NCBI GenBank assembly: GCA_024704765.1
Contig: JAKMXF010000034.1
Location: forward strand, 1-64,000
Source: Oopsacas minuta
Lineage: Eukaryota; Animalia; Porifera
Length of the DNA stretch: 64,000 nt
Direction: 5' to 3'
Below, one piece after another: positions 7,962 to 30,345 of the stretch. Position 1 is the stretch's first letter. Every line of letters starts with the position of its first letter. The notes under the pieces are model-generated. The model did not search any database. It had not been told where the DNA came from and saw only the letters and a program-made list of their open reading frames with translations. Made by a program: the position numbers and the translations under genes.

Positions 7962-10900
7962 ATGCTATTGATTCTAATTAGCTGTATTTTGCAGGGAATA
8001 TTATTCACGAATGTTCACACGGTTAGGAGTTACGTAGACGGGGATGTTCGATTAGCTGACGCACAATATAGAGTGTCAGCTTATTACAACAGACAGTATG
8101 TATTTGGTCGGGTTGAAGTCAGTTTTGAATCTAACTGGGGAACTGTATGCTGGAATAGATGGAGTTTTTATGAGTCTAGAACCGTATGTACAGAGATAGG
8201 ATACCACCGTCCGTCTGATTGGAGCACTGCTGGACCCAATAGAATTATACAAGATGATAGAGTAATTTTGCTTGATAATTTGTATTGTAATGGTGAGGAT
8301 AGATTGATTGACTGCAGACATAATGGTTACAACAATGTCCGTGAAAGATGTACGCATTATGATGACGTCTGGGTAGAGTGTTATAGAGATTTTCCTGTGC
8401 ATGTATCAGGTAACTATTATTAAATATACTGAATTTTGGAAAGATTGTATTATGCATTCGCTATGAGTTTTTTGCTGGGTATTTCGTAACTTAGTTTCGC
8501 TCTATAGATTTACCAATCAGATTAATAAGCCAACAGGCAATTAATGCTTACAACAGTCAAAATAATACATATTTAAATGAGAACGATGTTGTTCACGCGG
8601 GATTGATACAAGCTAAACTCAACGGGGATTGGTACTACATATCTGGTGTAGGATGGGATCTTGTAGATGCTAGAATATCATGTAGACAGCTGGGTTATCC
8701 TGATGTTAATTATATCCCCGAGTATGATCCTGAAATAGCATTGAGTGAAGATCAGCTGATCCAGGTTACAATGGAGAATTTAGATTGTGTAAGCAACGAG
8801 AGAGAGCTAAAGGAATGTTACCATGATGGTTGGCTTGTTTCGGATTATGATGTGACGAATTTAGCAAGTGTTAATTGTGTAACAAAGGAACAATTCTTAT
8901 CATCAAAAGAAACGGTAATATAAGTGTCTGTGTATAATTTCAAATTACAAATGCTAGGAGCTTTAGCTAGATCAATTCTCGACTGTTGATAAACATTATA
9001 ATTGATACTACAGAGGAACTTCGTTAATACGAATTTCCGGATAAGACTAACAATATTTGCACATAATCAGGTTCCTACATTGGATATCCAATTAGTATAA
9101 CTCCGGTTAATTAATACGAACTCCGGATAAGGCAAACAAAATTTGACCGTCCGTTCGTGTTGGTACTAACGAGGCTAGTGTAATTGGGTAGGGAACTTGA
9201 TTATTCATTTTGCAATTTTGGCTAGATAATATTTTTAAGGTCAAATTGTGATAATGAAGGGACACTCTTATCATTACTTACCATAATCACACATATTATA
9301 GGACTCAGCGATATGTAGGAACCTGGGATAAGAGTGATAAGACGTACTTAATAGAATACGTGAATTAAAATTATTACTTCATAGTTATTTCGCCTGAGAG
9401 GTGGTAGCAGCTACTGGGAAGGGAGATTAGAGATTCTACACGAACTATCCTGGGGGACTATCTGTAGCAAAGATTTCACACTCACACATGCAGATATAGC
9501 TTGTAAGAGTTTAGGACTAGGAAGAGCTGAGGAAATGTTTAACACTGCAAGCAGTGGGTATGGACGTGGAATAGGAGAGATATGGATTGGAGATTTTGAC
9601 TGTAGCAACCCTTTATCAGCTGATTCTCTGCTAGATTGTGATTCTAGTGATTGGGGGTATTCTACTTGCAGATATGATCATGCTTGGGATGTTGGTATCA
9701 AATGTCAAGTTCCTAGACCTGAGAGAAAGGTATGATAATAAATAGAATAAATATCTATTAAATGAATACAAATAAAAACATTACACATTGAAAACTATTC
9801 AATAAAACTGATAGTTTTGAATGCGTAATCTTATTAGTTTTGTGAAATAATTCCTAATAGTAGTATGTATGTATTCACAAGACTTGTTATGCTCCATACG
9901 TTGTTATTATGAATTATTGAATCCATTAAATATTGAACTGACGACTTGGGGGCGCTTCATTTGTTCGATAAGTATTTTCCATGTCATTTGGAGTTGGCCG
10001 GAAGTGTCCTTGACCCCCTACTTGTTGCTAAGTGTGTTTACAACTCACTAAGAAGGTGATTGAATTGGAAATTTCTTGGATTATCCAACTAGATTGCATT
10101 TGGCAGAGAATATGAGAATTTCTAACTCACTATTTGGTTAGCAGTTATGGATTTTCATGGCATTGTCGTTGGATCTTGGCCTTAAGAATTGGCCGGAATT
10201 ATTACAGCTAGTCCGCAATTCATAAATCGTCCCGATAGCTCAGATGAAAGTGATTGAATTCCACAAATGCTACCAAAGTCCCATGAATTTAGACAAAAAC
10301 CGCTAGCGAAACACTATATGCAATCTAGTTATATAATCCTGGAAAATTCCAATTCAATCACCTTCTTAATGAGCCATAAACACACTCAGCAACAAGTAGG
10401 AGGGTCAAGGAAACTTCAGCCCAACTCTCAAGACCCCGATCCAACGATTATGCCATGAAAATCCACAACTGTGCAATCCAAATATTCAAGAAATAATTAC
10501 TTCAGATTTTCGTATAAATGAAAGCGGTCTGACGACTTCATAAATGAATCTAATGATAACAAAATGCCGCAATATGAATCTTTCTTTGGAGCAGAAAGGG
10601 CGGAAGTAAAACTTTGGTCTGACTATGAGCCAATTAGACCAGCCCCAGGCCAATAAGATAAGATACTTAAAATTTAGGGAGGAACTGAAATTTCGCTAGT
10701 TCCTGGCCGGATTGGCTCCGCTGGCCCTGTGGACCTATCCTTGAGTGAAACAAGTTGATTAACAAAATCAGAGGTAATTATATTTATAATCATTAGATTC
10801 GTATGCTACGACAATACATCTCTCGCCAATACACAATGCCTGGAGTTAAGTTCTACTACACAGAAATCTACCATGAGAATACCTGGAGCTCTCCTTGCTG

Positions 10901-12306
10901 CTACTCACTCCTGCCTCGTATCAGCACTAATAGGCTATGTAGAGAGTTAGGTGGGGTAGTATTTAGTTAATAGTATTATTTTAATTTTACAGGTGTCAAA
11001 ATGTGATTATTTGCTAATAGTATTGAATAGTATTCACACACGTTCCATTCCAAGTATTGCCAACACATTGTTATTTCCATTGTTACTGATATCGAACTTC
11101 ATATTTGTTAAATCTCGGGGACCTATCTAGCAAGATAGTAAGTAGAGCATGATAGAGCTATCTATGTGTAATATTCTTAGAATGTTAATAATAAATCTGA
11201 AATCAATCTCTAACCTAAAAGAATCTATTTATTTTGAAAATACTACCGATTACGGCCGAAATGTTTTGTCCGTAACGAAAAGGAACACTAAAATGTTATT
11301 AACCAATTCCCGCACCCAAATCGAGATTACAGCACCCTTTTGACGTCATATAATGACACATTTTCCCTGCCGTATTCAGTTAATGCAGGAGAAGAATCTA
11401 TGTACCTGTATCAGTCTATAATCATAGTCCACCTCTAATATTCCTTCCTTGTTAATTATTGAATATATTTGAGATTTCCATCTCTGTACCAGATACATGC
11501 ATTGAAATTATTGATAATGGAATGATAACAAAATATGTATAATATTATTTTGTAAATCGAAACAAAAACAAAGATTTGTGACTGTTTTTTGTGTTAAGTT
11601 TAATATTCAATTCTAACGTCCCCAAAGTTCTTTACATATTTATCACAATATGTATATAAGTGCATTAAATATTTCTCATCAAACATTCCTTATAGAGTGC
11701 AACCTATATAAGTGTGGAATTCCGCAATAAATTTCTTGAATAATCAATTTTTGTGCTAAATTTGGAAAAAAAAACACGTATTTATCGCTATGATGAATTG
11801 AAACTTTTGGTTTTCTCAGAAGAAATTACTTACAAATTTTTATATTCAACCAACAACCTTAGGGCATATTATAGTTATCAGGAAATTCGCCTGCCCGACT
11901 TCCCCACTTATAAAGGTTCTACTGTACCCCCTTTGCTTTTAACTTCCTTCGTTATTCCCATCTTCCCGTTAACTTAGCTTTGTCTATGGGAAAGAATTCA
12001 CCCTCTGAACCAATTAATTATGTATTTATCGATCCAGCTGCTTAAAACTTTGTTTGATAGCTAACTCGTACCATAACTCCATGAGCTACTTTTTGAATCT
12101 AATCTATTCTCTATAATTCTTAGGTTTGGGGTTTGGTTTACCTTATCTGAGTCGCTGTGAAACAGATCCTAACAAGAGCCAGCAATCAGGTTTAAGTGGG
12201 TATATTCTATGCTATAAACAAGAGTACTTTTCAGAGAATTGTCTGAGTCAATTAACAAAATTAGATCAGTGCTACTACGGTTATGACGTCATTGCTTGCG
12301 CAGATA
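7962..12306 (+). CDS. Exons 1-5 of the LOXL gene: signal peptide and four SRCR domains
   Basis: SRCR motifs: VRL...GRVEV...WGTVC...VCTEIG; IRL...SCRQLG; FRLRGG...EGRLEI...WGTIC; IRML...TEIYHENTW...LCRELG|LGFG...ILC...NC...QC...DVIAC. Confidence 0.88.
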
Positions 12307-15300
12307 GTGAGTTATATTATTTTAATTTTGAATTATATCTTTTATTGTTTTTATTCCAAAAATAATATAGGACCCCCAAGCGCTATACAGTAGAACTCTG
12401 TGTTTTCATTTCTTTATAAGAGAAATGTTGATTAAAATTTCAATAAACACTCAAAATAAAAATAGGTATTTACAGCTAAAAGTCTATTCCTTGACAATTT
12501 ATGGTTTTTTCGAGGAGCAAAATACCTGGTGACAAACCCCTGCCCCGAATTCAACTGTATTTACACATGCTGATGCGCTGGACTCACAAATTTAGATATC
12601 CTCAGAGATAAATACGATTTTTAGAAATAGCAATTCTTCCTCATACTAAATACAGACGATACTACATTCTCACTTTACACGGCATAATATTTGTCACAAG
12701 TTGCATTAATAAAATGCAAGAATTACATTTTTTGAAAAGTGATAATTATGTACAAAAGAATTCCATACATATTTATGAGGTACAATATCTGTGTCATGGA
12801 AATTCAGTGAAGAATCTTTATATTACTTATTACAACAAATATTTCCACAGACAACCCGTCAAAAAACACATGATATGTGTAGAGCGACAATGTTCTACAA
12901 AAATATATTATCATAACCGCGTGTCTATATCCAAAAATGTCAATTTTCTACTTGTATCAATGGCATTTGAAGTCGGGAATAATAATCGTGACCCTTTCCG
13001 GGTTCCTAAGGTCATGTCCAATCGACGCTCTGTCTTTACCAAATCGGAGAATTCAGTTCTTGATTGTTGATTTCATACTTACTTCAGCAAATTAATTAGT
13101 ATTAAAATTGTTGAGAACAAATATTGAAATATAATTGAGTAATAACCTGTTTTGTTATAGGTTCTATATTCCAGTAGATATTTTACCGATGGTCATAAAT
13201 GCCAATGCCAAAATAGCTGAAACCTGAAAATTAATTGATAGATTTTCCCAAACTAAAGCCTGAACGATAGTTGAAACATCCTCTAAATATTGAAATTAAC
13301 AAAATAGTAAATGAATTGCCAAATATTATTAGACAGAGTTACGAACTTTTGAATGCTCTAAGTGTATACACCCATGAGATATCTCATGGTTACTGTCTAG
13401 ATAATATACAACCATAGAGTGCCGATAGATAGATAGAACTTCAACAACCAGCTGCCAATAAAATGAGACATTCTTATTAATTATCATAATAAGTAGCCAG
13501 TAACTATGGAATCCTTAAAATTAGTCACCCATGTGAATGAAGGAACAATGTCAGAAATAAATAAATAATTAATCTAATTCTCATTAATATAATAATATCA
13601 AGACGTATAGCACACAGTGGCTCTATAGGTGGATTATATTGATTTTTGTTACGACTGAATTAGTAATACAAGCAAGCTTGCTTTCTTGCACTGTGCGGTA
13701 AAGCGAACACTTCTTGTCCACGGATGGCATATACATGCATATCCAGTATTAAAACGACTCAGAAATTCGGAATAGCTTTTCTACGGTCTCGCATTAATTA
13801 ATCCTACTCTACTTTATGAATTACAATATGTAAAATGGTCAATAATGTACCTGTATTTCTTTGGGCCACAACTCGGTGCATTTTTGTGATGCGAAGAATG
13901 TTTATAAAGTGAAAAGTTTGTGAAGATATAATTTTCAGTTATAATAATTGAGGAAACGAGATGTTAACGAGAATTGATTAAACTGAAAATTTATTGCCAG
14001 TCCAAAACAACAAAATCTCAAATCAGCGTCTGTGCCAACTTAAATTTTACCAAATTAATTTTAGTGGATTATTGAAACATTTATTCTATTAAATATCCAG
14101 GAATGTATGTTTTACTGTACCGACTATACTTTAGTATTATTGAGCTTAGTCTATTAAATTATATTAGTTAAAAAAGTTGCACTATTAATTGGAGGCATTA
14201 TGTGTATTGAATTAAACTAACCTTTCATAGTGCCTCCAATTAATAGTATCACTTTATACAAATGTAATTAATAGGGTAAGCTGTCTGCACTGGTGTAATT
14301 TTATATTTTTAAAGTCAATCAGGCGGTCTATTTATTTCCTAGGGAAATATTCAATTCTCGAAAATTCATCTAGCATCAGGCAATTCAACCTAACATTATT
14401 CGTATTATTGAAATTAGACAAATTTCAGGAGTGTTTAGCCAAAAAATTAGGAGGGGGCGCTCCTCATTCAAGTTTAACCTTTTCTTAGAAAACATCGGTG
14501 AAAACGGTCCCTATGTAAGTAGTTGGAGGGCACCACCCTGCCAAAATATTCATTTTGTAATAATTTTGGACGATTTCAGTGGTGCGTATCGAATTTGGTT
14601 GCATTTCCCGGTACTAGATGCAATTTTCCATGTTGCCCCGGAAAAATAAGATAACCTGAAGCAATTCGTATCATGTTCTCTTACATGTAACCAGTCCGAA
14701 GTTGGGGAATTTGTGTTAATTATTTTGAAATGTAGGCAGGGTTGGGGCAGATTACATTCAGGTGATTTCTATTACGAGCTCAAGTGGATCTATTGAAAAT
14801 GACAAGAAAGCAGATCGACCAAATATTTGATAAGACTGTCATAATTTCAACAAAGTTGACAAAGGCAGTATTTACAATTACATGCTTATGCCTTCTGACA
14901 TTGATATACATGGGAGTGATGCTGCATTACGTGAGTTACCCATTCATTGCAAAATCTAAAGGACTGAGTCACACTGAAGTAGGGATTATAATGGGAGTTT
15001 TTCCATTTGTCAACATTCTAACGTTTCCTATTTCTGGAGTATTAACCAATAAAATGAACGTCCAACTAACTTTTGCAATTAGTTCACTGGTGCAATGTAT
15101 TCTGTTTTCGTTATTCGCATTTGTACCTAGCATGGAAAGGATTCCATTTGAGATATATTCTTTTCTATTTCCAATCATTTTCTCATTCCCAGTATCATTC
15201 TTTTACAACTCAACATACGCTTTACTTCAACAAGTATTCCCACGACATGCAACACTAATCCTTACTATACAGTATGTGTTCTTCTCCTCTGCATACCTTA

Positions 15301-18300
15301 TGGGACCCCCGGTTGGTAGTATCCTCTACGATAAAATCGGGTTTATGAATATGTTTCTTGATTTTTCTGCGGCTGGAATACTCCTATCATTCGTAGCAAT
15401 ACTTATTTTGTACTTTTCACCGATCAACACAAAGATTAAGAAAAAAATTGAAAAACCCGAATCATTTCTCATATTCCGTATTCTCTCCACGCCATCTATT
15501 TCCTTAAATCTCTTATTCACCTTCCTATCAGCTTCATACTACTTCTACTTCTTACCTGTTATTGGTCCATATCTAGCTTCTCGTTATGGCGTAAGTATCG
15601 TGACTGTAGGCTTATTATTTATGGTAGCTGAAGTTAGTCATTTAGTGATTGCATTGCCTCTGGGATATGTGCTAAATAGGTCTTCAAACCCTCCATATTA
15701 TTTCATTATTATGAGTGGAATAATTATCCATGCAATTGGAATATTTCTGTATGCACCATCTTCTATTCTCTTTTCACTTTCTGGTAACTTTCTCCCTATA
15801 TGCTTTGTAGGAAGTTCATGTATTGGTATAGGATTTGCATTAGCTTATGTACCAACCATGTCGGTTTCGCTTAATAGAGGACAAAACACTTTTCCATCGT
15901 GTCCTACGAGTACGAATACAATTATCAGTGGTCTGATGACAGGGACATACTCTATTGGGGAATCATTCGGGCCTATAGTTGGTGGAATAATATCTGAGTT
16001 TATAAGACTTGACGTCACAACATTCTATCTTTCACTAAGTCTTGCTTCAGTCTCAATACTAGCATTTATAGCCATGTTTTTCAACAGAGAACATGAACTT
16101 TTGTTTAATCTTATTAGAAAACAATTCTCCTATATTGTGAAGAGTGAAGACGCTGAAACTTTACGATTGATAAAATGAGTATTATCACTACTTTTCCCTA
16201 CACATTACTGAATTACTGTTCTATGCTCATAAACTATTAATTAGAACACTACTACACTTATATAAATTCTAAAGCGTATCCTATTTAGTTCTTTTCGCGA
16301 TGTGATGCGGGATTTGTCATGTTCGGTCATACACTCATAATGGCCATAGAAATTCAACTTGACCAAAAATGACGTAAAATATCTCTGTTTCCAGTGCGAC
16401 CAAGTTTGGTCATGTGACCACAGGTTGTAAACCCTGTCGTAGGGTATCCATTATTCCTCAAAATGTTACCTGCTGTTGGTTGAAAAATACATCACCCAAC
16501 CACGACGAAAAAGTAAAGGCAGGGGTGGGATTCGAACCCAGGTCAGCGGGTTATCCATAATGATCTTAACAACTACGCCAATGAGACATAATGGTCATTT
16601 ACGACAAAAAACTTGGGCTGGCGAAGAAAATTGAAATTGAAATTAAAAGTGTAGACACATAACCATACACGGCTTTTAATAAGTTAACATTTGCCAAATC
16701 ATACTCAGTATTTCTGGATAATAGATAAGTAATTTTTAATCATAAATCTGTCAAATTTGTTACAAACTATCACAAATGACAGATGAAAATATGAAATTTG
16801 AAGCATGCCCTCTAAATATATTGTAAGCAGCTTGTAATATTAACGTAACTATATTATGGAATTGACCACTGTAATATAATACTAACTAGATAACTATTGA
16901 ATAAACCAAACACAACAGATATGCATTAAATTATATATATTGACATGCTCCGAATGATATAACAGAATTTCTGCAAGATGCTAACAAGATTCATATTTAA
17001 CTCTAGAAATAAATGGTGCTATATTGGTGTAGCCATTTTAGTAATTTTCTGTATTTTCATTTACATAATACCCAGTGGAAATGGAAAAGTGAAAAATTAT
17101 GAAGTAGACATATTTGACCTGTTTAACAGAGAACCGAATCAGCTCGCTAATTTGAACATAACATGTCGGGATTCACCATTGGATAAATATAATTGTTATT
17201 CCCTATCGACATCGAGATTAGCTAATAGATTTCCTCGAATACTCATAATTGGATTCGGTAAAGCAGGTACACGTGCTCTACTTAACTTCCTACATTTGCA
17301 TCCATCAATAACAGGCCCTCCTGTAGAAGTTAATTATTTTGACAAATACTACGATAAAGAGAGTTTACAGTCATATTTAGAAACATTCCCGCCTATTAAT
17401 GAGAATATTTCTAACATAGAAAAGAGTCCAAGCTACATTATCTCCCCTGGCACACCCTATAGACTTTCATCAGTGATAAGTGCTCTTGATATACCCAAAG
17501 AATCTATTAAACTAATCGTATTAATGAGAGATCCATTGGAGCGAGCTGTATCAGAATATTTGGAATGGGTGATACAGAGAACGAGAGAATTTCAATCATT
17601 ATCCTCATTTGATGAAATGGTGTTCAATAGTGAAACGTTGCCAAAATTCATTACAACATCTGAATACGATATACATGTTTCCAGTTGGTTAAAATATTTT
17701 CCCCTTGAACAGTTCTGTTTCGTAGACGGAGATTTGTTCATTGAAGATCCATTTCCAGTTTTACAAGAGCTTGAGATATGTCTAGGGATAAAAGCGCATT
17801 ATAAAAGAACTGATTTTGTATTTGATCACGGAAAAGGTTTTTTTTGCGTCAATGATGAAAACTCTATTCAATGTTTGGGTAAGTCAAAAGGAAGAATTCA
17901 CCCTGAGATTGAGGAAGAGACGAGGAAATATCTTAGGAAACATTTCAAGTCGCATAATTTACGGTTAGAGAAATTGATTCATAAAGAGTTTACATGGGCT
18001 AGAAAAGATAAGAATATTTTAAAAAGATTTCTATCAAAGGTCTTTTGAGTTCATTCAATTATTAGGTCATGTAAAATACATTACTTGTTTCTTATCAGGA
18101 ATTTCTTCGGAAGCTGGGATGGCGGGCGGTAATTTATTTTCTATTATCTAGGCCAGTTAATATGTAAAATATTTTTGATTCTTCGATAATCTTGTCACAT
18201 TCTCTCTGGGCATAAAAAATATTGAATTTTTCAACTATTCAGTAGTAAAATGTGGCTTGCACAATCTGTACCAAAAAAATTATCCATCAATTTGGAAAAA

Positions 18301-21300
18301 TACAAATATAATCTTTCCTGACAGGTGATAAAATTTGGGAAGGGCGGGGATGAGAAACAAGTATATTACTTTACATGGCCTAAGAGTGCTGATTTATATT
18401 CTTACGAGCGCGCTTCGCTTGCTCGCGCTACGCGGTTGCGAACACTTCGTATCCACAAAATGGCCTACGGCCCTCGAGTACATAAACTCATAATCTTAAC
18501 CGTAGCAAACATGATACTGCCACAATCTTTAAATCTGCTTACTTTATGTACCTAAAAATATGCTAATATTCACAATATGTTGTTTACAATATCATATTTG
18601 TACTCAGCATACTCGATTACCTCAGTATAACCATTGAAAGCATGTTTCTACAACAACTTTGATTAGCTAGATCCTATTAATTATTAATAATAATTTCAGA
18701 TCTGTGAAACCTATTAGTTCTTCTGAATACGTATATTCCGTCCTAATTTCTCCTAATTATCTATGCTCAGGCTACACTGGAAATAACTGATCTAGTTAAA
18801 CACAAGCTTCGTACGTACACAAATACATAGCATTAGGCTTATGGTACAAGGCCAACTATTAATAAAACTCCTGATCAATGTATCACATAACTCGGATGGA
18901 AAGTTTAGTTAAAAAAGGCAAATTATTGTTTTCGGAGAAGAATGAACCAGAATTCCAATTTGGGAAGAGAGGAACTGAATTTGATATGATTACCTTACCA
19001 GTTGGAATAGCTCTGAACTCTAAGGAAACTGTATTATTCGTATGCGACATACTCAGTCAGAAAATACAAGTTTATACAATAGATGGTTATTTTATGACGT
19101 CATTTGGTACTGATCATTTAAAGAAACCTTGTGGCATCACGATGTATGGCAACAGATTGTATGTAACAGATGTCAGAGCACATTCCTTGTTAATGTTTGG
19201 TAACTATGGTGTAAAAGCAACTGGGAAATGCGGAATTAGAATTGGAGAATTACAATTTCCGCGAAGTGTAACATGTGACAGCAAGGGCGATGTGTATGTG
19301 ACAGATTGCGGCAATCTGCGGATAGTAGTATACAGTGGAGAACTTGAACTTAAGAGAATAATTGCAAGTGGACAAACCTGGACCCCTATTGATTCTAGAA
19401 TATTCCATAAGGAAATAATTGTACTGTCACAGCATGCTCCATTTATTCGGTGTATTAACCTGGTTGATAATTCTGAGAGGAACATATATGAAGTAGACAA
19501 GAATGTTAAAAATCCTTGCTTCTTCTGTGTGGACAAGTTTGGAAATTTTGTGATTAATGACGCTGGCTCGAAGAGAATAGTTATAACTAATCCGCGAGGT
19601 GAATTATTGAAGATAATCGATGAGGGCTCTTCTGGTTCATTTATGTTTGGAACACAAATTACATCTTATAACAAAATTATTGTAGCACTATGTGCTGGTA
19701 GAAAAACCATCAGTGTTATTTAAATCAGTTTTTACTCTATTAAGCTACATGTTATTGTGAATAGTCTGAAACTTTGTGAGATATATGTAGGTATATCATA
19801 TTTGGTTGCTAAAGTTTAATTTGTATCTCATTAGCCATTATGTCTATACTCTATAGTAGATTAATATATTCAATAGTAAATATTTAAAATTTGTGGCTGA
19901 ATACAATCAAGTGAAAATAGTGCAGCTCCTATTTAGAGATAGTCCGTACTGTATTTCCCCTTGGGAAACTCTGATAATTATTACTAGAGTTGCTCAACTC
20001 CTATATGGCATGGACGATGTGCGACGTCTGTCCGTACGCGCCACCGTGCGAAATATGGCAGTCCGATTAACATGAAAATTTGTGCACATACATTTTGGGT
20101 CAGAGATTTGCACATCGGGTGTTTATTTTGAAATTTTCACACTTTTGGTGATTAATCATGTTTTCACACCTTTCTATGTTATTTCCAAAGCATGTTAGAG
20201 ATTATGGGGCAATTGGGTGGGTAGTGTCCGATTCTGAAATTTTCAGAATATCAAAGTTACAAACACATATGATTAATCATATTTTCACACATTTTGGCGT
20301 GATCCATATGGCTGAGCTGCACACCAAGTCTGTCGACTGTACATTTTTCTAATTTGTTTCACTATTTATTGATTTTGTAACAAAATAGATGTATAGACAC
20401 GCTTTTAAGTGTATACTGATTGGAGATTGCGGTGTAGGAAAAACAAGCCTCAGAGATGTATTTCTATCCAAAGAGTATAGATCGTATCATTTCTGCTCAG
20501 AACATTTTTTCTCAAAGGAACTAAGAATCGATAACGAAAATATTAAACTACAAATATGGGATACTCAGGGACAAGAGAGATATCTCCTACTACCTCAAGT
20601 GTATTATTGGGGAGTAGATGCAGTGATGTTAACATATGACATCACAAATTTCCAATCATTTGACAATCTTAGAGAGAAATGGAACAAAGATGTATGTAGC
20701 AAATACACTCAGTGTATTCTTGTGGGCAATAAATGTGACTTGGAGGTTAAGAGAGCAGTGGATAGTACAACCGCAATGGAATTTGCTGAAAGTTTAAAAA
20801 TCCCATTTATTGAAACAAGTGCTAAATGGAGTATCAATGTAGAGCAAGCGTTTGTGTTAATGGCAGCAATGATAATGAAGAAGTTACCAGAGAATGAATC
20901 AGATACGTTTGATTTTAATAATATTATGTTGAATAGCGATAGTAGGGATACAAATAACATATATGCTAGATGTCTTTGTTAATGCTTTTTCACAACTTTT
21001 TTGGTGATTAATCATCTTTTCACACCTTTCTATGTATTATTTCAATAGCATACTGGAGTTGTTTAGGTTTCAACATGTTGTCAACGTCAGGGGTAATTGG
21101 GTGCGTAGAGTCCAATTTTTGAGATTTTCAGATCCTTAAAACTACAAATTTACAGATTTATCATATGATTTATTATATTTTCACACATTTATGGTAAATA
21201 TTTCAAAATAATGTAACGAAAAATCGAGCTTTAACATTTCGAAGGGGCTATTCAATAGCCTCACCCTTAACATTATTATAGATCTTTGTAACAGCTGATT

Positions 21301-24300
21301 TATTAATTTCTCATAAATCTAATTCATGCAACAGTAAAATCAAATATATTAAGTAAATTCGATAACAGAATCATCAAAAGTGTATATAACTAATCCTCGT
21401 CTCTCCCACTTCATTTCTAATTTCCTCACAGTTTTCTAATGCATATTTATACGCAATATTAATTTGTAACTTTGCTTCTGAAATATTTTTCTTTTTGAAG
21501 TTCATTGCAGTCAAACTCGACTCTTCATCATAGCAAATAAAATCTTGAAACAAACTATATTCAGCCCCAAACAAAGCAATAATAAAATTTATACCAATTG
21601 AATTCTCGTTTGAATCTTCAGGTTCTGTCCGAATGAAATGTCTAATGTGATGTATAGCTATAAAATAGAAAATCGGAGACCATGTAGCTCTCAGTTTATT
21701 TTGTAATAACATTTGTATCATACACGTCAGTACCTGTGTCTCAGTCTCATAGGGTTCTAACAGACCAGTGATTGGTAAGGATATGTCCTGGATTGGAATA
21801 GGAAATAATCTGAATATTTCTGTGTTATTTTGCCAGATAATGAGTTTAATGCTTGTGGGTGGATTTGAAATTAGTGGAAGAAGGATAAATTGGGCATAGG
21901 TAGGATCTCCAAATGACACAGAAGTGAAGTGGCTGCAAATTTCCGAGTAAAGTTCACAGAAATTTGTTACTCCTTGTATTTGAGTGAAATCTATTTTCTT
22001 AATGAATTCTTTTCTAGAATATGTTTGTAAGATTTTTGTTAATTCCAGGCTAATTTCGTCTGTTAGAAATATATCTCCCAACATTAATGCAACCAATACT
22101 CTTGCTATTCTTGTGCTAGGATACATTACATTCAAAAATTCAATATCATTTGTTTCAATCCAGTTGTAGTACTTAAGACAATCTGTTAAAAACCGCAAAT
22201 GCGTTTGAAAACCTCCTGGAATATTTGGTTTTGATTCTTCTTTATTATAAAGTATGAATATTGGCATTGTTAGCCAATCTATGGGGAAGAGAGGAGTAGT
22301 AAAAGTTGGTAAAGAAAGAGAATTTATACTAACTCTATTTCTGTTGTATACTGCTTCAGAATCGTCTATTGTTGACGGAGTAACATTCACAAACTGTAAT
22401 AACGCAGTGTAAGTCCTAAGAATTGATTGGAGTTCGTCGCTTGTCAGTTTCGCATTTTTCTGATAGAATTTCGGTTTAAATAAATAATAATTAATAAGAT
22501 TATTCAAATAATAATCTTGTCCAGGGTATAGATTAGTTGTTAGTAAGAATATTAAATCGTGACACAATGTTACTTCAAATTCAAGTTGTCTCTCATACAA
22601 AACCATTAACTTGTATATTATTGGTATTTCTTGTAGATAAAATGCAGGAGAGGTTTGTGTTCTGTTATACTGAGCAACTATTGATCGTAGATATTTAATT
22701 ATGACGTCATATAGCCCAGTAGTATGATATAGCGATTGTATTTTCAAATGACTGAGTTGGAAAGATATAGACATTTGGAAGCTAATTAAGTTGTAAATAA
22801 GATCTGTTGTGATAATATATTCATTGCTTACTTCTGTATTACGTAGTAGAGTTGGGGAATATTGTATGGAAGTATTTGAATTCACTGATAAGTTCAATAA
22901 ATTGTTGAATAAAAGTCTCAAAAGTTTGTTTTGATAAATGGAGGTATATTGTGTAGTTGTGTATGATTCTAAATGTGAAACTAACTCAACTGGAGATTGA
23001 AACTTTGATATTATAGATTTATGTGTTAGAATTGTGAAAAAATAGAAAACAGCTGATACAATTCTCTGTTGACTAAATTTCAATTCCACTTGCAGTGATA
23101 AAGTTGCTTTTTGACTGATACCGAGTATTAACTGTATGATAGGATTAATAAGCTCAATACTATGTTCTTTGCTAAATGCTAGAGCCAGCGATATCTCACT
23201 GATATACTGTATTAGAGATGCAAGGCAATTCATATCATTTTCATTTAGCTCTGTGTATTTGGTTAGATTGTATTGTAGCTTTTGGACAAATGTTTCATAA
23301 CCTGTTTGAAAATAATCTATTCCGATTCCGTAACAAGCTAATGCTCTAAGTGTTTGTAAACTTGAAATAATAAGTTCTGTTATTTGTGTATTATTCTCAG
23401 TGAAATTGTTTGGTTCCAACAATGCGAATTGTAATAGAGTTTCAAATAACCTTACTTTTCCAACTAATAAGTTTGCACAGACCTTGTTTACTACAACTAG
23501 ATGGTAACAGAGTTTAACTACTTCCACACAACACTGTCCATAAGATCCAGCCTCTTTCTCAAACGTGACCATAAATGGAAGGAAATTACGTAAAATTAAC
23601 TCCAATAACTTATCAGCACTAACTACTTGTATTGCTGTTGATTTAGCATAACGAGTTATATGAGTAAGAATTTCTAGACAGCATACAATGGAGGTAGGAG
23701 GAGGTCTCACCGTTTCAATGATGTATTTTATTCTGGTTAGAATATTCGTTTTAATGAGGCCTTGCACCAAATCTTCTTGTAGTAATTCTAAATCTGTAGA
23801 ATCTTGTTCTTCATCTTTGGAAGATTGTGAGTTTGTGTTTAGTAACGGTAAGCTTATACCGAGTGTTGTAAATTTAATCTTATCTATGAAATCACAGTCA
23901 TTAGTATTGACAAGTAAATTCCTGATTCCTAGTATCCCTATACATATTATTGAGAGAGTAGGGTTATCCATTGCAATACGGAATATCATAGGAATTCCGA
24001 TATCCATGAGGATTTTTAAAAGATTCGAATCAAGATGTTTTTCTGAAAAAATATCATTTTGTGCGTTTCTAGCTATAAAAGCTAACGTTTGTAGACTTAA
24101 TATTTTCTGTGATTGAAAGGAACTGTCAGCTAAATGTACAAGTTCCTCTAGAGTATACCCAGGACGCGTTATCTCATCTCCGTGATGAAACAGACCGGTT
24201 TCAAGATGTCTATCATTATCTAATTGTATAAATTGTCCTTCAAAATTGAATCTAGGTTGGGATGAATCAAGTTTTTCTGATTCGCTTTCGTTAGTTTGCA

Positions 24301-25613
24301 TCCATTCTAGTTTTTCAGGTTCTATCGTATCGAAATGTTTCCATTTCTGTCTTTTAGCCTCTCCTATTAATTCTAACACTTCTGCGTTTAAATTTGAACT
24401 CTCCAGTTGAGGAGTTAAACTTAGTTCTTTATTAATCTCTTCAGAAGGAATGTCTTTTTTCCGTTTCCTATTTTGAAGGAAATTTAATAAATTCGGATCT
24501 AAACTTGCTCTCAACTTTTCTTGTTCTTCGAGAATTTCTTCTTTCGTCATCTGTTTGAGTCTATTTTATATTTTCGCTATGAATCTTTTCTATTTCAGAA
24601 TCTGTACTTATAGTACCTCCAGCAAGACCTTCTCCCGTTATAACAGAATTATACACATTTTGGTTGACAATTTTTCTCTCAACTGGATCTTCTGGGATAG
24701 GACATTTCACTTGAGGCCCTACCACTTGTGCTTTGCCGTGCTTTTCCATGTGTAGAGCGAACAAACTCTTTTTCTTACCTTTTCCATCAGACATAGCAGA
24801 TTTCTGTAGAGACTTATAATCAATACTGACTGCTTTTGGAAATGGTAGAGTAGATTCTTGTGGTAACAAGGGTAGCTTGATATCGGAGTTTTCTGTAACT
24901 TCATTGAGTAGAGAAGGCACTGACTTATCGTCTTGATCCATTATTTCTTCTATTGCAGGGTCGATTAATTGTTCTCTATTACTTTCTCTTTCATTTTCCC
25001 TGATTAATTCTACAGAAATGTTAGATTTTAAATCAGGATCTTTCTTCATTTGTTCTTCAAAATCTTTTTGGAATTTCAATAAATCTTCTTCTGTGTCTTT
25101 ATTAGAAGGTCTCTTCATGCCAAAGATTTCCATTTCTAAATCTAACTAAAGTATTATATAACGAGCTGCTTCGCTTGCTCGCGCTGCGAGGCATGCGAAC
25201 ACTCTGTGTTCGCAAGGCACTCGGCACTTCGCGCTTAGAACTTAGCAAAGTATAAAATTGCAAAATTAATATTTCAATAATTTGTTTACTTTATATTCAT
25301 GAAAACAACAAAGAATTTACATAAGAGAAACTTGAATATGCGAAATCAGGAGAATGAAATTGAGTTCTTTCCCTACCGTAGCATTACATTACTGATATTG
25401 ACTGGAGGAGTATTGGGAGCGTGCTTCCAAGCACTTCGATAACTTTATGCTACAACTTCAACAGTTAAGTATTAAATTTATTCCTTAATACCCAAATATT
25501 CTTACTTTTAAGCTGTTTCATTGATACTAAGTAACATTTAATTTTCCACACAATATTTACGACACACAAACTAAACAAAATTTACGAAATAAGACACAAA
25601 CACAAACATATCA

Positions 25614-25652
<39 letters not shown>

Positions 25653-28600
25653 GGTTTTGGTCGTGGTGGTCAATGTGTACTTACCATAATAATGTTTTTC
25701 GTATGTTTTGAACATTTCGTGGAGAATTACAGGCCTACCAAGCCAAAGCTACAACCACAACTTCCTCCCCTTCTCCCATAAGATATACGATTATTAAGAT
25801 TACCCATTTCTCCTGTTTAATTCTACAGAAGTGTTATATTTAAATCAGGATTTTTTTTCATTTGTTCTTCAAAATCTTTTTAGAATGTCAATAAATCTTC
25901 TTCTGTGTCTCTGTTAGAAGGTCTCTTCATGCCAAACATTTCCATTTCTAAATCTAACTAAAGTATATTATAATAAATATACAAACTCTGCTTAATCGGG
26001 ACACATTGGTTCAGGGCATTTTTGTCTGATTAAGCGGAGTTACCAATTAACCGAAGAATTGCTATTAATAATGCTATGTAGCAGCATTTCTCTATTTTTC
26101 AATGAAAGTTCCCCCACCCAAAGTACAAAACTTGAAATTTTCGGATCATTTTGGGTCGGAGGTTTGCACCTCGTATATGAATTTTTCTAAAGTGACTATT
26201 CACACCTTCCTATGTAAAATACAAAACACGTTGTCAGGGGTAATTGGGTGTGTAGAGTCCGATTTTGAGATTTTCAGAGTCTGAAAGTTATACATTAACA
26301 GATTTATCATATGATTACTTCATATTGTCACACCTTTGCATATTATTCAAAATCATGCCAGACATTTCGTGTTAACTGCTAGTAAAGGGGGTAGTCGAGT
26401 ATATAGATTCCAAATTTGACATTTTAATACTATGGATAATTCGGGATAATGATTTATCGTTTCTAAACAGCGTGTGTTATTTCGCTAAACGTGTAGTGTT
26501 TTTGTTACACAAGAGTGCAGTAAGACGTTACTACAGAATGTTATCCCTTCTCTTAACAAAAATAGTACAGTGGAACCCCGCTTAACGGCTACCCCGGAAT
26601 AGCGGCTACAAAGTCCCATTCCAGATGACATTGACATCAATTTATTCCACAATTACGGCCATATTTTTCGGTCCCATAGATGACCGTAATGCCGAGTTTC
26701 CATTGTACGTATTATGACTGCTATCCTAGTGTACGTCTTATCCGCGCTCTAATGTATCCCCAAACATTGGAATAATCCAAAATTCCACATATGAGAACAG
26801 CAATTATTCTCATGTAAATAAGTGAAAAGTCCTCTCAGAAAAGAGTAAAGAGTGAAAATAAATAATCCTTGGTGTACCTTGTAACGTGTATAATGTTATT
26901 CATGCTGAATAGGTATAGATATGCCATCTTCTCCAACGAATAGCTCGTATATTAATCCTTTCCTGCTGACACCAGATGAATACGTTTTCAGGAGAACAGG
27001 TTCATCACCGATTGAGAAATAAACCTCTGTGCCTTCATCACTAAATTCTGACTCTACATCTAGTAAAATGCCGTCCACATATATCTCGAGTGTTATCTTA
27101 TCTAAAGTAACACGATGCTTCACCTTACCCAATTCAGGCGTCCATACTATTAATGACTTTTTCATTGACTGTACAAACTTATCTAAAGGTTTTCCGTTCA
27201 CGTATAGAGTATATTCAAAATTCATTCCATTCGGTTCAATACTCAGAATAATTTTCTTTTCTCCAATTTTGAATTCTTGAAATCCAACGAGAGCTATCAT
27301 CCAATTCTTTCTGTATATTTCTTTCCCATTCACAGTTATAACTCTCTTTCCTGAAATAGTCCCGTGTACAAGTTCAACTACGTGCATATTGTCTGCTAGT
27401 AGTAAATTCCATCTGGCAGATGGCGTCTCCTTGACAACTGAAGAAAGTTGAGCCATTTTATTTGTTTGGTTCTTGATTCGATCCTTAAATGAGCTGGAAA
27501 TAATTGTTTATATTAAAACAGTAACCTAGATAATTATTGCTATATTAAAAAGCTGTCCCTGTTCCAGATAATTAAATACAATACAGCGACACTGAAGGAC
27601 ACTTCGAGAAGCGGACAAGTCCACAGCCCTGCCCCCCACTGTAGTACAGTAATCATTATAACGATAGATTACTACATAGTACAATAGTAATATCTTCTAT
27701 CCTAATATTGTATTAAGCTTACACCATAGGCCAGTGGTAGGGTATTAGTATTGTTGATTGGACAATCACGATCGCGATCTGTTTTTGACGATCGGAGGAT
27801 GATCGCTGATCATTTTATAAACAGTGATCGAGTGTAAGAACGCGATCAAAATGATCGTGATTGTGATCGCGATCCTTTTTGGTGCAAGGTTCGGAATCAT
27901 GATCTCCTATCATTTTATTGAACGATCAGGATCGCGATAATTAATTTGGTGATCGACTAATCCCCTAGCCCAGTGGTTCTCAAATGGTGTGCAGCTGCAC
28001 AATAGTTTCTTCGCAACGAAAATGTCTCTGGTATAACACTAATTAGTTCCCAGGGGGTCACACGAATGATGAATCGTTGCGAAATTATCAACAAAAATAT
28101 TCAGAATAAGATGGGTAACAACAAAACGACATAAAATACTAATAAACTCACTGATTTGTAGAAGTTCCAGATTTGGTTCCGAGTTTGCCTTTCTTCGAGA
28201 GAAGTTTGAAGTATTATGACCCTGAAGTAAAGGCTGAAGTACGAGACAATAGAGAAAAGAATAGAATAGAATTCAGTACTGTTGGAGAACTGGCCTGTGC
28301 AATCGAGGACAAATGTTTAGCTAGTAGTGCTGATAGGAATAATCACAGTCAAGAAATTAAGCTACTCAGGTAATTGTTTTAATAATTAATGTAGGCAAAC
28401 TGGCAAAGATTGAAAAGAAGGAATACAATAGCAATTAATAATAACCTCTGTGAATTACGGATACAGGTTTCTTTGTTGGTAGAACCCAAACAGAGTGAAG
28501 GCAATTTCAGGACGTAAGGTGTATTTTAGTGGGACTGTCATAAAATGGAACCTGTATAATCCGACACTAGTTGGCACATGGAAATCGTGTCGGATTATGC

Positions 28601-30026
28601 AGGTTCACTCAATACAATGGTCCATTGCATTGTATTAACATCAGCCTGTTCTACCAGCAAGCAGGATTTTGGCTTAATTAATGAAATATCTGGATTAATT
28701 CGCTCGAATTTATCCTGAAGCAACACCAAAGAAGGTGAATATTCAAAAGTTCCAACAGCTTTTTCAATCTATATTACCGCAATAATATACAATACACTAA
28801 ACCCTACGCTTAATAGAGCCAACACCTTTATTCCGTTTAATCGAGTCAAAATGGCCTGGTCCCGATGTGACACTATTAAGCGGAGTCTACTGTATTACGA
28901 AAATTTCACTGCGGTACCTCAGTGTACGTATAACGAATGCATGGATATAGCCTTGATCTTGCTAAGGTCCACTGAAGATTAGTGTACTGATCTCTGAATA
29001 GGATAGATATACGTATTTAATTATTGTTGGTTTAGATTTTCTAGTCACACAGACAATTTCGGTTTACTACCTCTCTATCCTCCTGTCCCTGAGAGATATT
29101 GGACATGGCACAGATGTCACAATCATTATCACTCTATGGAAGTTTTCGTTTCCTATCATTTGTTAGATACAGATGGTAACAGAGTTGCAGAGGGACATAA
29201 AGCTAGCTTCTGTTTAGAAGACAGTTCCTGTGTTAACTCAGAAGATCGTTATTTCTACTGTGATGAAGAGCAAGGCATTTCTGTTAATTGCGGAGATCAT
29301 TATGGAGCTGAGTTAGATTGTCAGTGGATTGACATAACAACTGTACCACCTGGTAACTATAAAGTCGAAGTGAGTGAATTCGCGGCAACCCTGCCAAGCC
29401 CGTTTCAGTGAAATTAAGTTAGTAAGGCCATTGACGCACCGCTTCCAACTGCCATGCGTACTACTTTTAGGGGACTCGCTTATCAATTAAAAATTGACAT
29501 ACTGACCCTTATTAGCAATTTCGTAGTTTGTACTGATTGCCAGTCAACTCGTCCCTTGTCAACTCAACATCAAGGGGCGTAACTCCTCTGATCAACAGCT
29601 GGAGGCGCGTGTAGGACTAGTACAAGAAAACTCTGGGTCCACTGTTATGACAGAAATTGCCCTCTATATTATTATTTAATATTTAATCATGGATGCTGGA
29701 TATCGAGTTGACCAAAATTAACACAATTATTGCCCAAAATAGCTACGAGTTAACTAAAAGTAATAGGTGCGAGTTGACTGGCTCCCATTGTAGTTGATAC
29801 TTATGCTCCCGTGATGTATGAATGTACCAAAGTTTGTGAGAGCAGAGAGTCACATAGCCCTGTATTAGTTACCTATGAATATATCATATAGGTAACAGTA
29901 AACCCTGTGAAGAGCATCATGGAAAGTAACTACGAGAACAATGTTCTCTCTTGTATGATAGAACTTGATGAAGATGGTTTCTATACAACGGATAACTGCC
30001 TACACTCAGGTAAATTATATAGCTAG
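7962..30026 (+). CDS. LOXL2: Lysyl oxidase-like protein (signal peptide, 4 SRCR, LOX catalytic domain), 8 exons, 737 aa
   Basis: Hand-spliced exons 7962-8409, 8508-8914, 9385-9729, 10797-10950, 12124-12306, 28162-28369, 29036-29369, 29892-30026. All introns are GT-AG with matching phases (1,0,0,1,1,2,0), giving 2214 nt of open frame. The symbol denotes the LOXL2/3/4 architecture, not proven orthology. Confidence 0.85.
9988..10431. repeat. Foldback element with ~110-bp inverted arms in LOXL intron 3
   Basis: 9988-10098 is an imperfect reverse complement of 10319-10431, e.g. AAGAAGGTGATTGAATTGGAA / TTCCAATTCAATCACCTTCTT. Confidence 0.75.
14799..16178 (+). CDS. MFS transporter, SLC18B1-like, intronless, nested in LOXL intron 5
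   Basis: About 12 hydrophobic segments. GPPVGSILYDKIG and SIGESFGPIVGG resemble SLC18-family motifs. The first ATG is at 14799 (the track starts at a GTG). Confidence 0.82.
   Translation: MTRKQIDQIFDKTVIISTKLTKAVFTITCLCLLTLIYMGVMLHYVSYPFIAKSKGLSHTEVGIIMGVFPFVNILTFPISGVLTNKMNVQLTFAISSLVQCILFSLFAFVPSMERIPFEIYSFLFPIIFSFPVSFFYNSTYALLQQVFPRHATLILTIQYVFFSSAYLMGPPVGSILYDKIGFMNMFLDFSAAGILLSFVAILILYFSPINTKIKKKIEKPESFLIFRILSTPSISLNLLFTFLSASYYFYFLPVIGPYLASRYGVSIVTVGLLFMVAEVSHLVIALPLGYVLNRSSNPPYYFIIMSGIIIHAIGIFLYAPSSILFSLSGNFLPICFVGSSCIGIGFALAYVPTMSVSLNRGQNTFPSCPTSTNTIISGLMTGTYSIGESFGPIVGGIISEFIRLDVTTFYLSLSLASVSILAFIAMFFNREHELLFNLIRKQFSYIVKSEDAETLRLIK
16518..16587 (-). repeat. tRNA-derived SINE head or tRNA pseudogene
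   Basis: The minus strand has an A-box-like TGGCGTAGTTG and a B-box GGTTCGAATCC at tRNA spacing, but the acceptor stem does not pair. Confidence 0.55.
16978..18048 (+). CDS. HS3ST: Heparan sulfate glucosamine 3-O-sulfotransferase-like (type II Golgi protein), nested in LOXL intron 5
   Basis: N-terminal TM anchor; 5'-PSB GFGKAGTRAL; EVNYFD; EKSPSY; 3'-PB RDPLERAVSEY; C-terminal CLGKSKGRIHP. Confidence 0.88.
   Translation: MLTRFIFNSRNKWCYIGVAILVIFCIFIYIIPSGNGKVKNYEVDIFDLFNREPNQLANLNITCRDSPLDKYNCYSLSTSRLANRFPRILIIGFGKAGTRALLNFLHLHPSITGPPVEVNYFDKYYDKESLQSYLETFPPINENISNIEKSPSYIISPGTPYRLSSVISALDIPKESIKLIVLMRDPLERAVSEYLEWVIQRTREFQSLSSFDEMVFNSETLPKFITTSEYDIHVSSWLKYFPLEQFCFVDGDLFIEDPFPVLQELEICLGIKAHYKRTDFVFDHGKGFFCVNDENSIQCLGKSKGRIHPEIEEETRKYLRKHFKSHNLRLEKLIHKEFTWARKDKNILKRFLSKVF
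18412..18446 (+). repeat. Interspersed repeat motif GCTTCGCTTGCTCGCGCT..GCGAACACT; second copy at 25168-25203
   Basis: A GC-rich motif shared by two sites in an AT-rich background, typical of small non-autonomous element ends. Confidence 0.55.
18878..19723 (+). CDS. NHL-repeat beta-propeller protein, nested in LOXL intron 5
   Basis: Repeated NHL blades: LPVGIAL...FVCD...IQVY; KPCGIT...LYVTD; FPRSVTCD..GDVYVTD.GNLRIVVY; NPCFFCVD..GNFVIND. Start codon uncertain. Confidence 0.85.
   Translation: MYHITRMESLVKKGKLLFSEKNEPEFQFGKRGTEFDMITLPVGIALNSKETVLFVCDILSQKIQVYTIDGYFMTSFGTDHLKKPCGITMYGNRLYVTDVRAHSLLMFGNYGVKATGKCGIRIGELQFPRSVTCDSKGDVYVTDCGNLRIVVYSGELELKRIIASGQTWTPIDSRIFHKEIIVLSQHAPFIRCINLVDNSERNIYEVDKNVKNPCFFCVDKFGNFVINDAGSKRIVITNPRGELLKIIDEGSSGSFMFGTQITSYNKIIVALCAGRKTISVI
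20138..21194 (+). repeat. Direct copies of an interspersed repeat (20138-20297 and 20991-21194) flanking the Rab gene; third copy at 26196-26338
   Basis: Shared blocks TTTTGGTGATTAATCAT.TTTTCACACCTTTCTATGT, GGGG.AATTGGGTG.GTAG.GTCC.ATT and CATATGATT...ATATTTTCACACATTT. Confidence 0.7.
20389..20982 (+). CDS. Divergent Rab-family small GTPase, nested in LOXL intron 5
   Basis: G1 GDCGVGKTS, G3 WDTQGQE, G4 NKCD, G5 ETSAK and C-terminal CLC (CXC prenylation). Switch I is degenerate. Confidence 0.88.
   Translation: MYRHAFKCILIGDCGVGKTSLRDVFLSKEYRSYHFCSEHFFSKELRIDNENIKLQIWDTQGQERYLLLPQVYYWGVDAVMLTYDITNFQSFDNLREKWNKDVCSKYTQCILVGNKCDLEVKRAVDSTTAMEFAESLKIPFIETSAKWSINVEQAFVLMAAMIMKKLPENESDTFDFNNIMLNSDSRDTNNIYARCLC
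21374..25133 (-). CDS. RPAP1: RNA polymerase II-associated protein 1; one +1 frameshift at 24561-24567; nested in LOXL intron 5
   Basis: RPAP1 N motif IHSENI-x-RLKQMTKEEILEEQEKLRASLDPNLLNFL spans the two ORFs. Also RFNFEGQ...GLFHHGDE..RPGYTLEELVHL..S....Q, and C-terminal FTSVSFGDPTYAQFILLPL. Confidence 0.88.
25617..25650. repeat. (GTT)n microsatellite
   Basis: About 11 tandem TTG/GTT units. A similar (ATT)n run lies at ~2900-2927. Confidence 0.9.
25840..25970 (-). pseudogene. Degenerate duplicate of the RPAP1 5' end
   Basis: Near-copy of ~25028-25160. The Gln codon CAA has become TAA (LLKFQKDF to LLTF*KDF). Confidence 0.75.
26568..26705. mobile_element. TA-flanked Tc1/mariner (pogo/Tigger-like) MITE
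   Basis: TA|CAGTGGAACCCC ... GAGTTTCCATTG|TA imperfect TIRs. Confidence 0.65.
26896..27456 (-). CDS. FAIM: Fas apoptotic inhibitory molecule, nested in LOXL intron 5
   Basis: HGTISGKRVITVNGKEIYRKNWM, EYTLYVNGKPL, EFSDEGTEVYFSIG and SSG..RKGLIYEL match both FAIM1 beta-sandwich domains. Confidence 0.92.
   Translation of the reverse strand: MAQLSSVVKETPSARWNLLLADNMHVVELVHGTISGKRVITVNGKEIYRKNWMIALVGFQEFKIGEKKIILSIEPNGMNFEYTLYVNGKPLDKFVQSMKKSLIVWTPELGKVKHRVTLDKITLEIYVDGILLDVESEFSDEGTEVYFSIGDEPVLLKTYSSGVSRKGLIYELFVGEDGISIPIQHE
27738..27966. mobile_element. GATC-rich hAT-like MITE
   Basis: Termini TAGGGTATTAGT / ACTAATCCCCTA. 14 GATC sites counted within 27770-27954. No clean TSD. Confidence 0.5.
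28162..30026 (+). CDS. Exons 6-8 of the LOXL gene: lysyl oxidase catalytic domain
   Basis: PDLV...LACAIEDKCLASSA...LLR|FSS; Cu-binding WTWHRCHNHYHSM; LTQ Lys in VAEGHKASFCLED; LTQ Tyr in CGDHYGAELDCQWIDIT; VNP....ESNYENN. Confidence 0.93.
29539..29782. mobile_element. MITE with perfect 13-bp TIRs in LOXL intron 7
   Basis: GCCAGTCAACTCG ... CGAGTTGACTGGC. Confidence 0.55.
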
Positions 30027-30345
30027 AACAAGTAAACTTATAATACGACATCCTCGCCCCGTATTTATCGCTGAATTAGATCGATCTAGATAATAGTGAA
30101 GTCTGTGAACTAGTGACAGTAATATTCATGTGGTAGCCATTTATAGCGAGCTGAAATAAGTTTCTAAATGACCTATGAGGCTATGACAGAATTGTAGCAA
30201 AACTATCTCAAATAATGCTTAATCAGTTACTATACAACCACTTGGCTTAAATTCCTCGTGATTATCAAAATCTAGGTAGATATAGCTATGATAAAGTGTA
30301 TGTGATAATCAGCTGTAATCAGATAGAATAGAATAGAGTAGAAAT

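Follow-up and report, generated by a model that had tools for sequence, protein, structure and literature searches.

The window analysed in this work is a stretch of 64,000 nucleotides (nt) from the glass sponge Oopsacas minuta (assembly GCA_024704765.1, contig JAKMXF010000034.1, positions 1 to 64,000 of the forward strand). It carries, on the plus strand, a lysyl oxidase-like (LOXL) gene, the exons of which begin at position 7962 and are interspersed with seven other genes, hereafter referred to as guests. It is very probable that these exons form a single gene of the LOXL2/3/4 type, with nine exons extending from 7962 to about 32.5 kb, which is spliced in cis and holds the seven guests in two of its introns. 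An earlier note, made from the sequence of the window alone, had described such a gene with six complete genes in its fifth intron.

Exons of the LOXL gene

According to Pfam and to a profile built from LOXL proteins, the gene encodes the scavenger-type domains SRCR1 to SRCR3, a putative, divergent SRCR4 and a LOX catalytic domain. Exon 1 (7962..8409, this and all the following exons being on the plus strand) supplies the start codon, a hydrophobic N-terminus (MLLILISCILQGILFTNVHT, signal-peptide-like as judged by eye) and SRCR1 (Pfam SRCR, 2.3e-17); it ends with the donor cag/GTAACT, where the slash marks the splice border, and is 52-60% conserved in four assemblies of related sponges. SRCR2 is encoded by exon 2 (8508..8914, Pfam SRCR 7.6e-15) and SRCR3 by exon 3 (9385..9729, Pfam SRCR 8.5e-22). 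The first half of SRCR4 resides in exon 4 (10797..10950), which scores an independent E-value of 0.0027 with the LOXL profile and is 42-57% conserved in the four assemblies, and the second half in exon 5 (12124..12306), which ends with ...IACAD plus 1 nt followed by the GTGAGT donor. Neither of the two SRCR4 pieces, so labelled in the earlier note, matched Pfam when searched singly; what supports them is weak scores at positions 418-509 of the LOXL profile and the conservation of their sequence in the relatives.

The LOX domain starts in exon 6 (28162..28369; VPDLVPS..., no in-frame ATG; positions 15-44 of the Pfam Lysyl_oxidase profile), has its catalytic core in exon 7 (29036..29369, Pfam 1.4e-47) and ends in exon 8 (29892..30009, profile positions 170-204). 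Exon 7 alone reaches 162.4 bits with PF01186 against a cut-off of 20.4, and exons 6 and 8 widen the match to profile positions 15-204. The pieces recognised by Pfam at the locus are located at 7962-8420, 8495-8920 and 9385-9732 for SRCR and at 28155-28370, 29007-29408 and 29892-30023 for LOX. Exon 7 contains an intact His motif WTWHRCHNHYHS, the Lys of GHKASFCLED and the Tyr of GDHYGAELDCQW, all of which align to the LOXL profile and which we take to be the copper-binding residues and those of the lysine tyrosylquinone (LTQ) cofactor, respectively. As these motifs are intact and exon 7 is 76-82% identical in the relatives, a secreted enzyme is to be expected, for which the N-terminal exons would be needed.

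The two halves of the gene are separated by intron 5 (12307..28161, plus strand), 15,855 nt in length, 52% of which is taken up by the coding regions of six other genes; its removal is deduced from comparison rather than from RNA. The donor reads gca gat a/gtgagt with 12306 as the final base of exon 5, and the acceptor reads tttgtag/aa gtt cca gat with 28162 as the initial base of exon 6. Both borders are in phase 1, with AAA as the split codon, and the protein continues as C-A-D-K-V-P-D-L-V across the join. The donor, the acceptor, the matching phases, the reading of the join and the size of the gap agree with the earlier note. Its range of 98-1,172 nt for the other introns is close to that of six of them, which measure 98, 470, 1067, 1173, 666 and 522 nt by in-frame GT/AG borders (98-1173 nt), and misses intron 8 with its 2,395 nt.

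The completeness of the exon set was assessed with the LOXL profile, which has 719 positions and was made from 26 full-length single-polypeptide LOXL proteins, namely a paralogue from O. minuta contig C298 and 25 others, with each exon of the window scored separately. The exons take up positions 12-139, 167-283, 291-396 and 418-447 (exons 1 to 4) and 466-509, 513-565, 567-678 and 680-714 (exons 5 to 8). All eight are collinear, exons 4 and 5 fall on SRCR4, and exon 5 directly adjoins exon 6, which means that nothing is missing between the two halves, as had been claimed earlier. The last Cys of SRCR4 is separated from PDLV by four residues, a spacing that recurs in single-polypeptide LOXL proteins of four other animals (shark, demosponge, cnidarian and ascidian); the earlier note had drawn this comparison with human LOXL2, which was not among the proteins compared here. 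The C298 paralogue (462423-464636, minus strand) is intronless and encodes 737 amino acids (aa), in which a signal peptide precedes four SRCR domains and LOX; the gene in the window is the sole intron-bearing SRCR-LOX gene of O. minuta. Orthologues of the C298 type are present in seven other assemblies and are 64-67% identical in the LOX region.

Splicing in the 3′ part of the gene was followed in RNA and DNA contigs from four public runs of one sample and study, covering the stretch 26700-30300. Run X4 is RNA-like, its exons reaching depths in the hundreds or thousands where the background is about 20. In this run introns 28370-29035 and 29370-29891, both with GT..AG ends, are removed, giving the joints 28369/29036 and 29369/29892, so that exon 7 has RNA joints on both sides. 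The LOXL contig departs from the genome after 30009, and its 28 loose letters are exactly 32405-32432 and are found nowhere else in the window. The splice from 30009 to 32405 adds a ninth exon and an eighth intron (30010..32404, plus strand, 2,395 nt, gt..ag ends) spanning a whole antisense gene for an FHA-domain protein; the LOXL gene thus demonstrably splices across a nested gene. The coding part of exon 9 (32405..32446) reads A-HILEGKQEKVEL-stop and is followed by the 3′ untranslated region with ATTAAA at 32573. The gene had previously been taken to end at 30026, but the stop codon at this position would come into use solely with intron 8 retained.

Guest genes of introns 5 and 8

The coding regions of six guests (14784-27456) lie wholly within 12307-28161 and that of the seventh, the FHA gene, wholly within 30010-32404. 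The four plus-strand guests are single-exon genes: an MFS transporter (14784..16178, first ATG at 14799; Pfam MFS_1 2.7e-31), an HS3ST-like sulfotransferase (16978..18048; Sulfotransfer_1 1.3e-18), an NHL-repeat protein (18878..19723; NHL 6.8e-11) and a Rab-like small GTPase (20389..20982; Ras 7.9e-45). On the minus strand there are RPAP1 (21374..25133; Pfam RPAP1_N, RPAP1_C and TPR_RPAP1), FAIM1, hereafter FAIM, with its coding exon at 26896..27456 (FAIM1 1.1e-54), and the FHA gene inside intron 8 (30346..31371; FHA 5.7e-17). The guests appear intact, since all of them have full-length Pfam matches and conserved orthologues, and FAIM is expressed, its coding exon showing high depth in run X4. 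The presence of six complete genes in the gap, four of them on the strand of the host, was correctly recognised in the earlier note. The block of SRCR and LOX exons is itself flanked by a GNAT acetyltransferase gene (plus strand) and the FHA gene (minus strand).

RPAP1 is divided into two open reading frames (ORFs) of 190 and 1058 aa by a 1-nt shift in a run of A near 24563 (24550-24570, minus strand). In all the relatives it is one ORF (...ENINRLK...), and the shift is probably a homopolymer indel in the assembly. Three intronless Rab-like genes clustered on O. minuta contig C166 (422255-449588) are 52-55% identical to the Rab guest, and the nearest O. minuta paralogue of the MFS guest is 34% identical to it. 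A recent duplication was considered as the source of these two guests and rejected, the nearest paralogues being just 55% and 34% identical.

Two stretches of intron 5, 12307-14783 (2.5 kb) and 25134-26895 (1.8 kb), are free of recognised genes. The former includes an ORF of 118 aa (12714-13070) that has neither a Pfam match nor a counterpart in the relatives. Scans of the region 7-33 kb for tRNAs and Rfam families returned nothing.

FAIM extends beyond the intron in which its coding region is placed. A minus-strand joint from 28152 to 27493 with CT..AC ends, reaching a depth of 2510 in run X4, is located 37 nt before the FAIM ATG and defines a spliced non-coding 5′ exon (28152..28369, minus strand, upper end approximate) that is antisense to LOXL exon 6. 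The earlier statement that FAIM lies inside intron 5 is therefore true of its coding region and not of its 5′ exon. Depth in run X4 is FAIM-like over 28152-28393 (7-10k, compared with 441 at LOXL exon 7), as the antisense FAIM exon overlaps exon 6. Owing to this overlap of a host exon with a guest exon in sense-antisense orientation, the FAIM promoter must be situated within LOXL intron 6. The X4 contigs are interrupted where the region common to both strands begins and ends, and one RNA contig departs from the genome after 28363 with the 11 letters GTAAGTTTTTT, close to the exon 6 donor and to the upper limit of the FAIM 5′ exon.

Conservation of the locus and probable joining of its two halves

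Exon-sized ORFs orthologous to the LOXL exons led to four assemblies in ENA (ERZ25072740, ERZ20067936, ERZ23487945/ERZ23490157 and ERZ25069837), which, to judge from their RPAP1 and FAIM proteins being 54-77% identical, belong to other glass sponges. The order GNAT, SRCR exons, HS3ST, (NHL), RPAP1 (minus strand), FAIM (minus strand), LOX exons, FHA (minus strand) is common to all four, with HS3ST and FHA in place in 4/4 and NHL in 3/4. Exons 1 to 8 recur in order in each assembly, including exons 4 and 5 at E-values of 1e-13 to 1e-19. The exon 8 donor, ...CLHS+g/gt, is kept in the relatives, and an exon 9-like peptide D-H-[ITV]-L-E-R follows FHA in three of them. The orthologue of intron 5 is 6.8-8.8 kb long and holds one or two genes on the host strand. 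Neither MFS nor Rab is found in this intron in the four relatives; of the five species, O. minuta alone has them there.

On this comparison the core consisting of HS3ST, NHL, RPAP1, FAIM and FHA is judged to be older than the divergence of at least five lineages of glass sponges, and the simplest reading of the identity gradient is that MFS and Rab were gained in the Oopsacas lineage. The gene order may have been kept because the guests are locked inside the host gene.

The borders of intron 5 are conserved as well. At the exon 5 donor all five species have an identical codon position and phase, C-A-[D/K] plus 1 nt followed by GTGAGT, GTAAGT or GTTAGT, and at the exon 6 acceptor the phase matches, with (Y)AG preceding 2 nt and [V/L]PDLVP; beside both sites the lineages differ in their intron sequence. 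No in-frame ATG was detected upstream of exon 6 in any of the five species. These splice sites and phases, together with the collinear exons and the lack of a start codon or signal peptide for the LOX half, strongly support the proposal of the earlier note that this is a single LOXL gene in which one intron is filled with other genes. The splicing of exons 1 to 5, the join of exon 5 to exon 6 and its occurrence in cis rather than in trans are suggested by comparison and not by reads, and ordinary cis-splicing is the most likely mechanism for the join. In this case RNA polymerase II would start upstream of 7962 and transcribe about 24.5 kb, from which the spliceosome would then take out eight introns. 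The guests, mostly single-exon, presumably would have their own promoters, and LOXL transcripts would have to get past the 3′-end signals of the guests, unless expression of the host and of the guests is separated in time or confined to separate cells.

Several observations weigh against a single transcript. The signal AATAAA occurs at 12442 and 12455, just past the exon 5 donor, where it could end an SRCR-only transcript. No crossing from exon 5 to exon 6, the RNA junction that the earlier note had proposed to look for, was found among the X4 contigs and loose ends listed for 26700-30300, which do show exons 6, 7, 8 and 9 spliced together. The acceptor of exon 6 is not readable from depth either, given that most of the depth over this exon comes from antisense FAIM. 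Finally, neither of two protein libraries contains a full-length transcript-derived LOXL orthologue or a cDNA-derived protein running across the exon 5/exon 6 junction: an exhaustive search of representative proteins with exon 6 found just a genomic ORF of 71 aa and a long protein that is unrelated, and a word search with exon 6 yielded only genomic ORFs running into introns. One protein matching the full-length paralogue query at first looked promising and turned out to belong to the paralogue lineage, the other matches being paralogue-type or distant LOXLs. A phmmer search of exons 5 and 6 against solved structures gave no useful match, the exons being too short.

Two other accounts of the locus may be given a small chance each. 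According to the first, the same-strand guests (MFS, HS3ST, NHL and Rab) lack promoters of their own and mature from the LOXL pre-mRNA by spliced-leader trans-splicing at acceptors next to their start codons, which would make intron 5 an operon within a gene, or else the LOXL halves are themselves joined in trans. HS3ST and Rab each have an AG immediately before the ATG, which is compatible with a glass-sponge spliced leader; for RPAP1 the AG is at -2, and for NHL, MFS and FHA it is absent. No spliced-leader reads were seen in 26700-30300 in run X4. The four same-strand polyadenylation sites assumed by the earlier note were not located, and a hexamer scan found neither AATAAA nor ATTAAA within 500 nt past the HS3ST, NHL and Rab stop codons.

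The second account, to which we attach a similarly low probability, is gene fission, in which the SRCR half (exons 1 to 5) ends by read-through at a poly(A) site near 12,470 and the LOX half (exons 6 to 9) is expressed from its own promoter or leader in the gap. It would be consistent with the position of the AATAAA signals 136-149 nt past the exon 5 donor, with the fact that no junction read was seen and with the public annotation, which presents the LOX half as a protein of its own. This model, named 'Lysyl oxidase-like protein 4 [Oopsacas minuta]' and placed on a contig of 69,256 nt, has 226 aa and the LOX domain only, and it realises the expectation of the earlier note that annotation by ORFs would split the gene. 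It begins with M-E-V-P-D-L-V, taking its start from a 4-nt mini-exon ATGG/gtaac near 28111, and has no signal peptide. The mini-exon was rejected as a start, being neither conserved in the relatives nor joined to anything in the RNA of run X4, and this tells against fission, as does the LOX half itself, which in none of the five species has a signal peptide or an in-frame ATG ahead of PDLV. In addition, exon 5 has a strong donor with the exact codon phase kept in five species, whereas a terminal exon needs none, the read-through tails are 6-19 aa long and unconserved, and in one relative (L007) there are just about 65 nt between the FAIM ATG and the exon 6 acceptor, which leaves no room for a promoter and a first exon.

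Bimolecular trans-splicing, in which the halves are transcribed apart and 12306 serves as donor and 28162 as acceptor for a join in trans, is somewhat less likely still. Trans-splicing of coding exons occurs in Drosophila mod(mdg4) and lola, and here, too, ordinary splice sites would serve to link a common 5′ part with 3′ exons from other transcripts. With such a mechanism the four same-strand genes would not have to be read through, and the conserved donor and acceptor fit it equally well. Unlike the situation in mod(mdg4) and lola, however, the LOXL halves lie in collinear order on a single strand, so that cis-splicing suffices and trans-splicing is not required, and no promoter or 5′ exon was found for a separate transcript of the LOX half. 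The LOXL gene itself cis-splices across FHA, and in the relatives the intron is merely 6.8-8.8 kb long with no more than two genes on the host strand to be passed, although glass sponges do possess an active spliced-leader trans-splicing machinery (PMC10282587).

An assembly chimera or a recent block insertion breaking the LOXL gene, the latter raised in the earlier note, might be suspected from an intron of 15.9 kb in a genome with a mean of 341 bp (PMC10280926), but is effectively excluded by the gene order, including the core of the block, shared with four independent glass-sponge assemblies, by the strong constraint on the LOX exons and by the DNA contigs, which tile 26700-30300 save for two dispersed repeats.

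Relation to other nested genes

Cis-splicing across a gene-filled intron would place the LOXL gene within a pattern that is already known in glass sponges. Several independent genes within one intron are also known elsewhere, in the Drosophila gene dunce, which has several genes in one large intron, and in intron 27b of human NF1, which contains OMG, EVI2A and EVI2B; both hosts are still spliced normally. In contrast to these cases, where introns of tens of kb in large-intron genomes hold mostly antisense guests, the LOXL gene belongs to a genome with a mean intron of 341 bp, and more than half of its intron 5 is coding.

In Aphrocallistes vastus 2,432 nested genes, or 12.4% of all genes, have been reported, 'many conserved', by Francis et al. 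in 2023 (PMC10282587), so the locus is less exceptional than the earlier note had supposed. For O. minuta, with 61,460,524 bases in 365 contigs according to Table 1 of the same paper, only 83 nested genes were called, a number described as an under-call (PMC10282587), and the O. minuta genome paper gives the mean intron of 341 bp and does not mention nesting (PMC10280926). Like the nested genes of A. vastus, those described here are mostly single-exon guests in host introns of a compact hexactinellid genome, with microsynteny kept among glass sponges. The LOXL locus is not described in the A. vastus report and differs from what is described there in having six coding regions in a single intron, with four on the host strand, a seventh gene in another intron, and a guest, FAIM, whose 5′ exon is antisense over a host exon. 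It is thus a striking conserved case of a known glass-sponge pattern and not a new kind of system; what is new is the corrected gene model.

By this correction a headless catalytic fragment of 226 aa is replaced with what is most likely a secreted LOXL protein of about 735 aa, which bears on work on collagen cross-linking in sponges. The protein resembles LOXL2, LOXL3 and LOXL4 in its domain order, in the spacing between the last SRCR4 Cys and PDLV, in the copper-binding His motif and in the LTQ Lys and Tyr. It differs from them in an SRCR4 too divergent for Pfam, in a short C-terminal tail that comes from the separate ninth exon and in having an intronless sister paralogue. As for the packing of genes in glass sponges, the locus offers a clear conserved example, with more than half of a 15.9-kb intron being coding, a core frozen in five species and two later additions, and it is a concrete place to ask how transcription of a host gets past four genes on its own strand.

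Two minor features of the stretch covered by the four runs may be added. The short dispersed repeats, located at about 27770-27890 and about 28850-28895, have a DNA word depth 10-25 times that of their flanks; contigs of every run break at both of them and many different loose ends attach there, the first being rich in GATCGCGATC-like motifs. Single-letter differences are found at 27175, 27580, 28449, 28497, 28528, 29514 and 29725 in runs X2-X4 and not in X1, and, as DNA-like runs carry them too, these seven are alleles or haplotypes rather than products of RNA editing.

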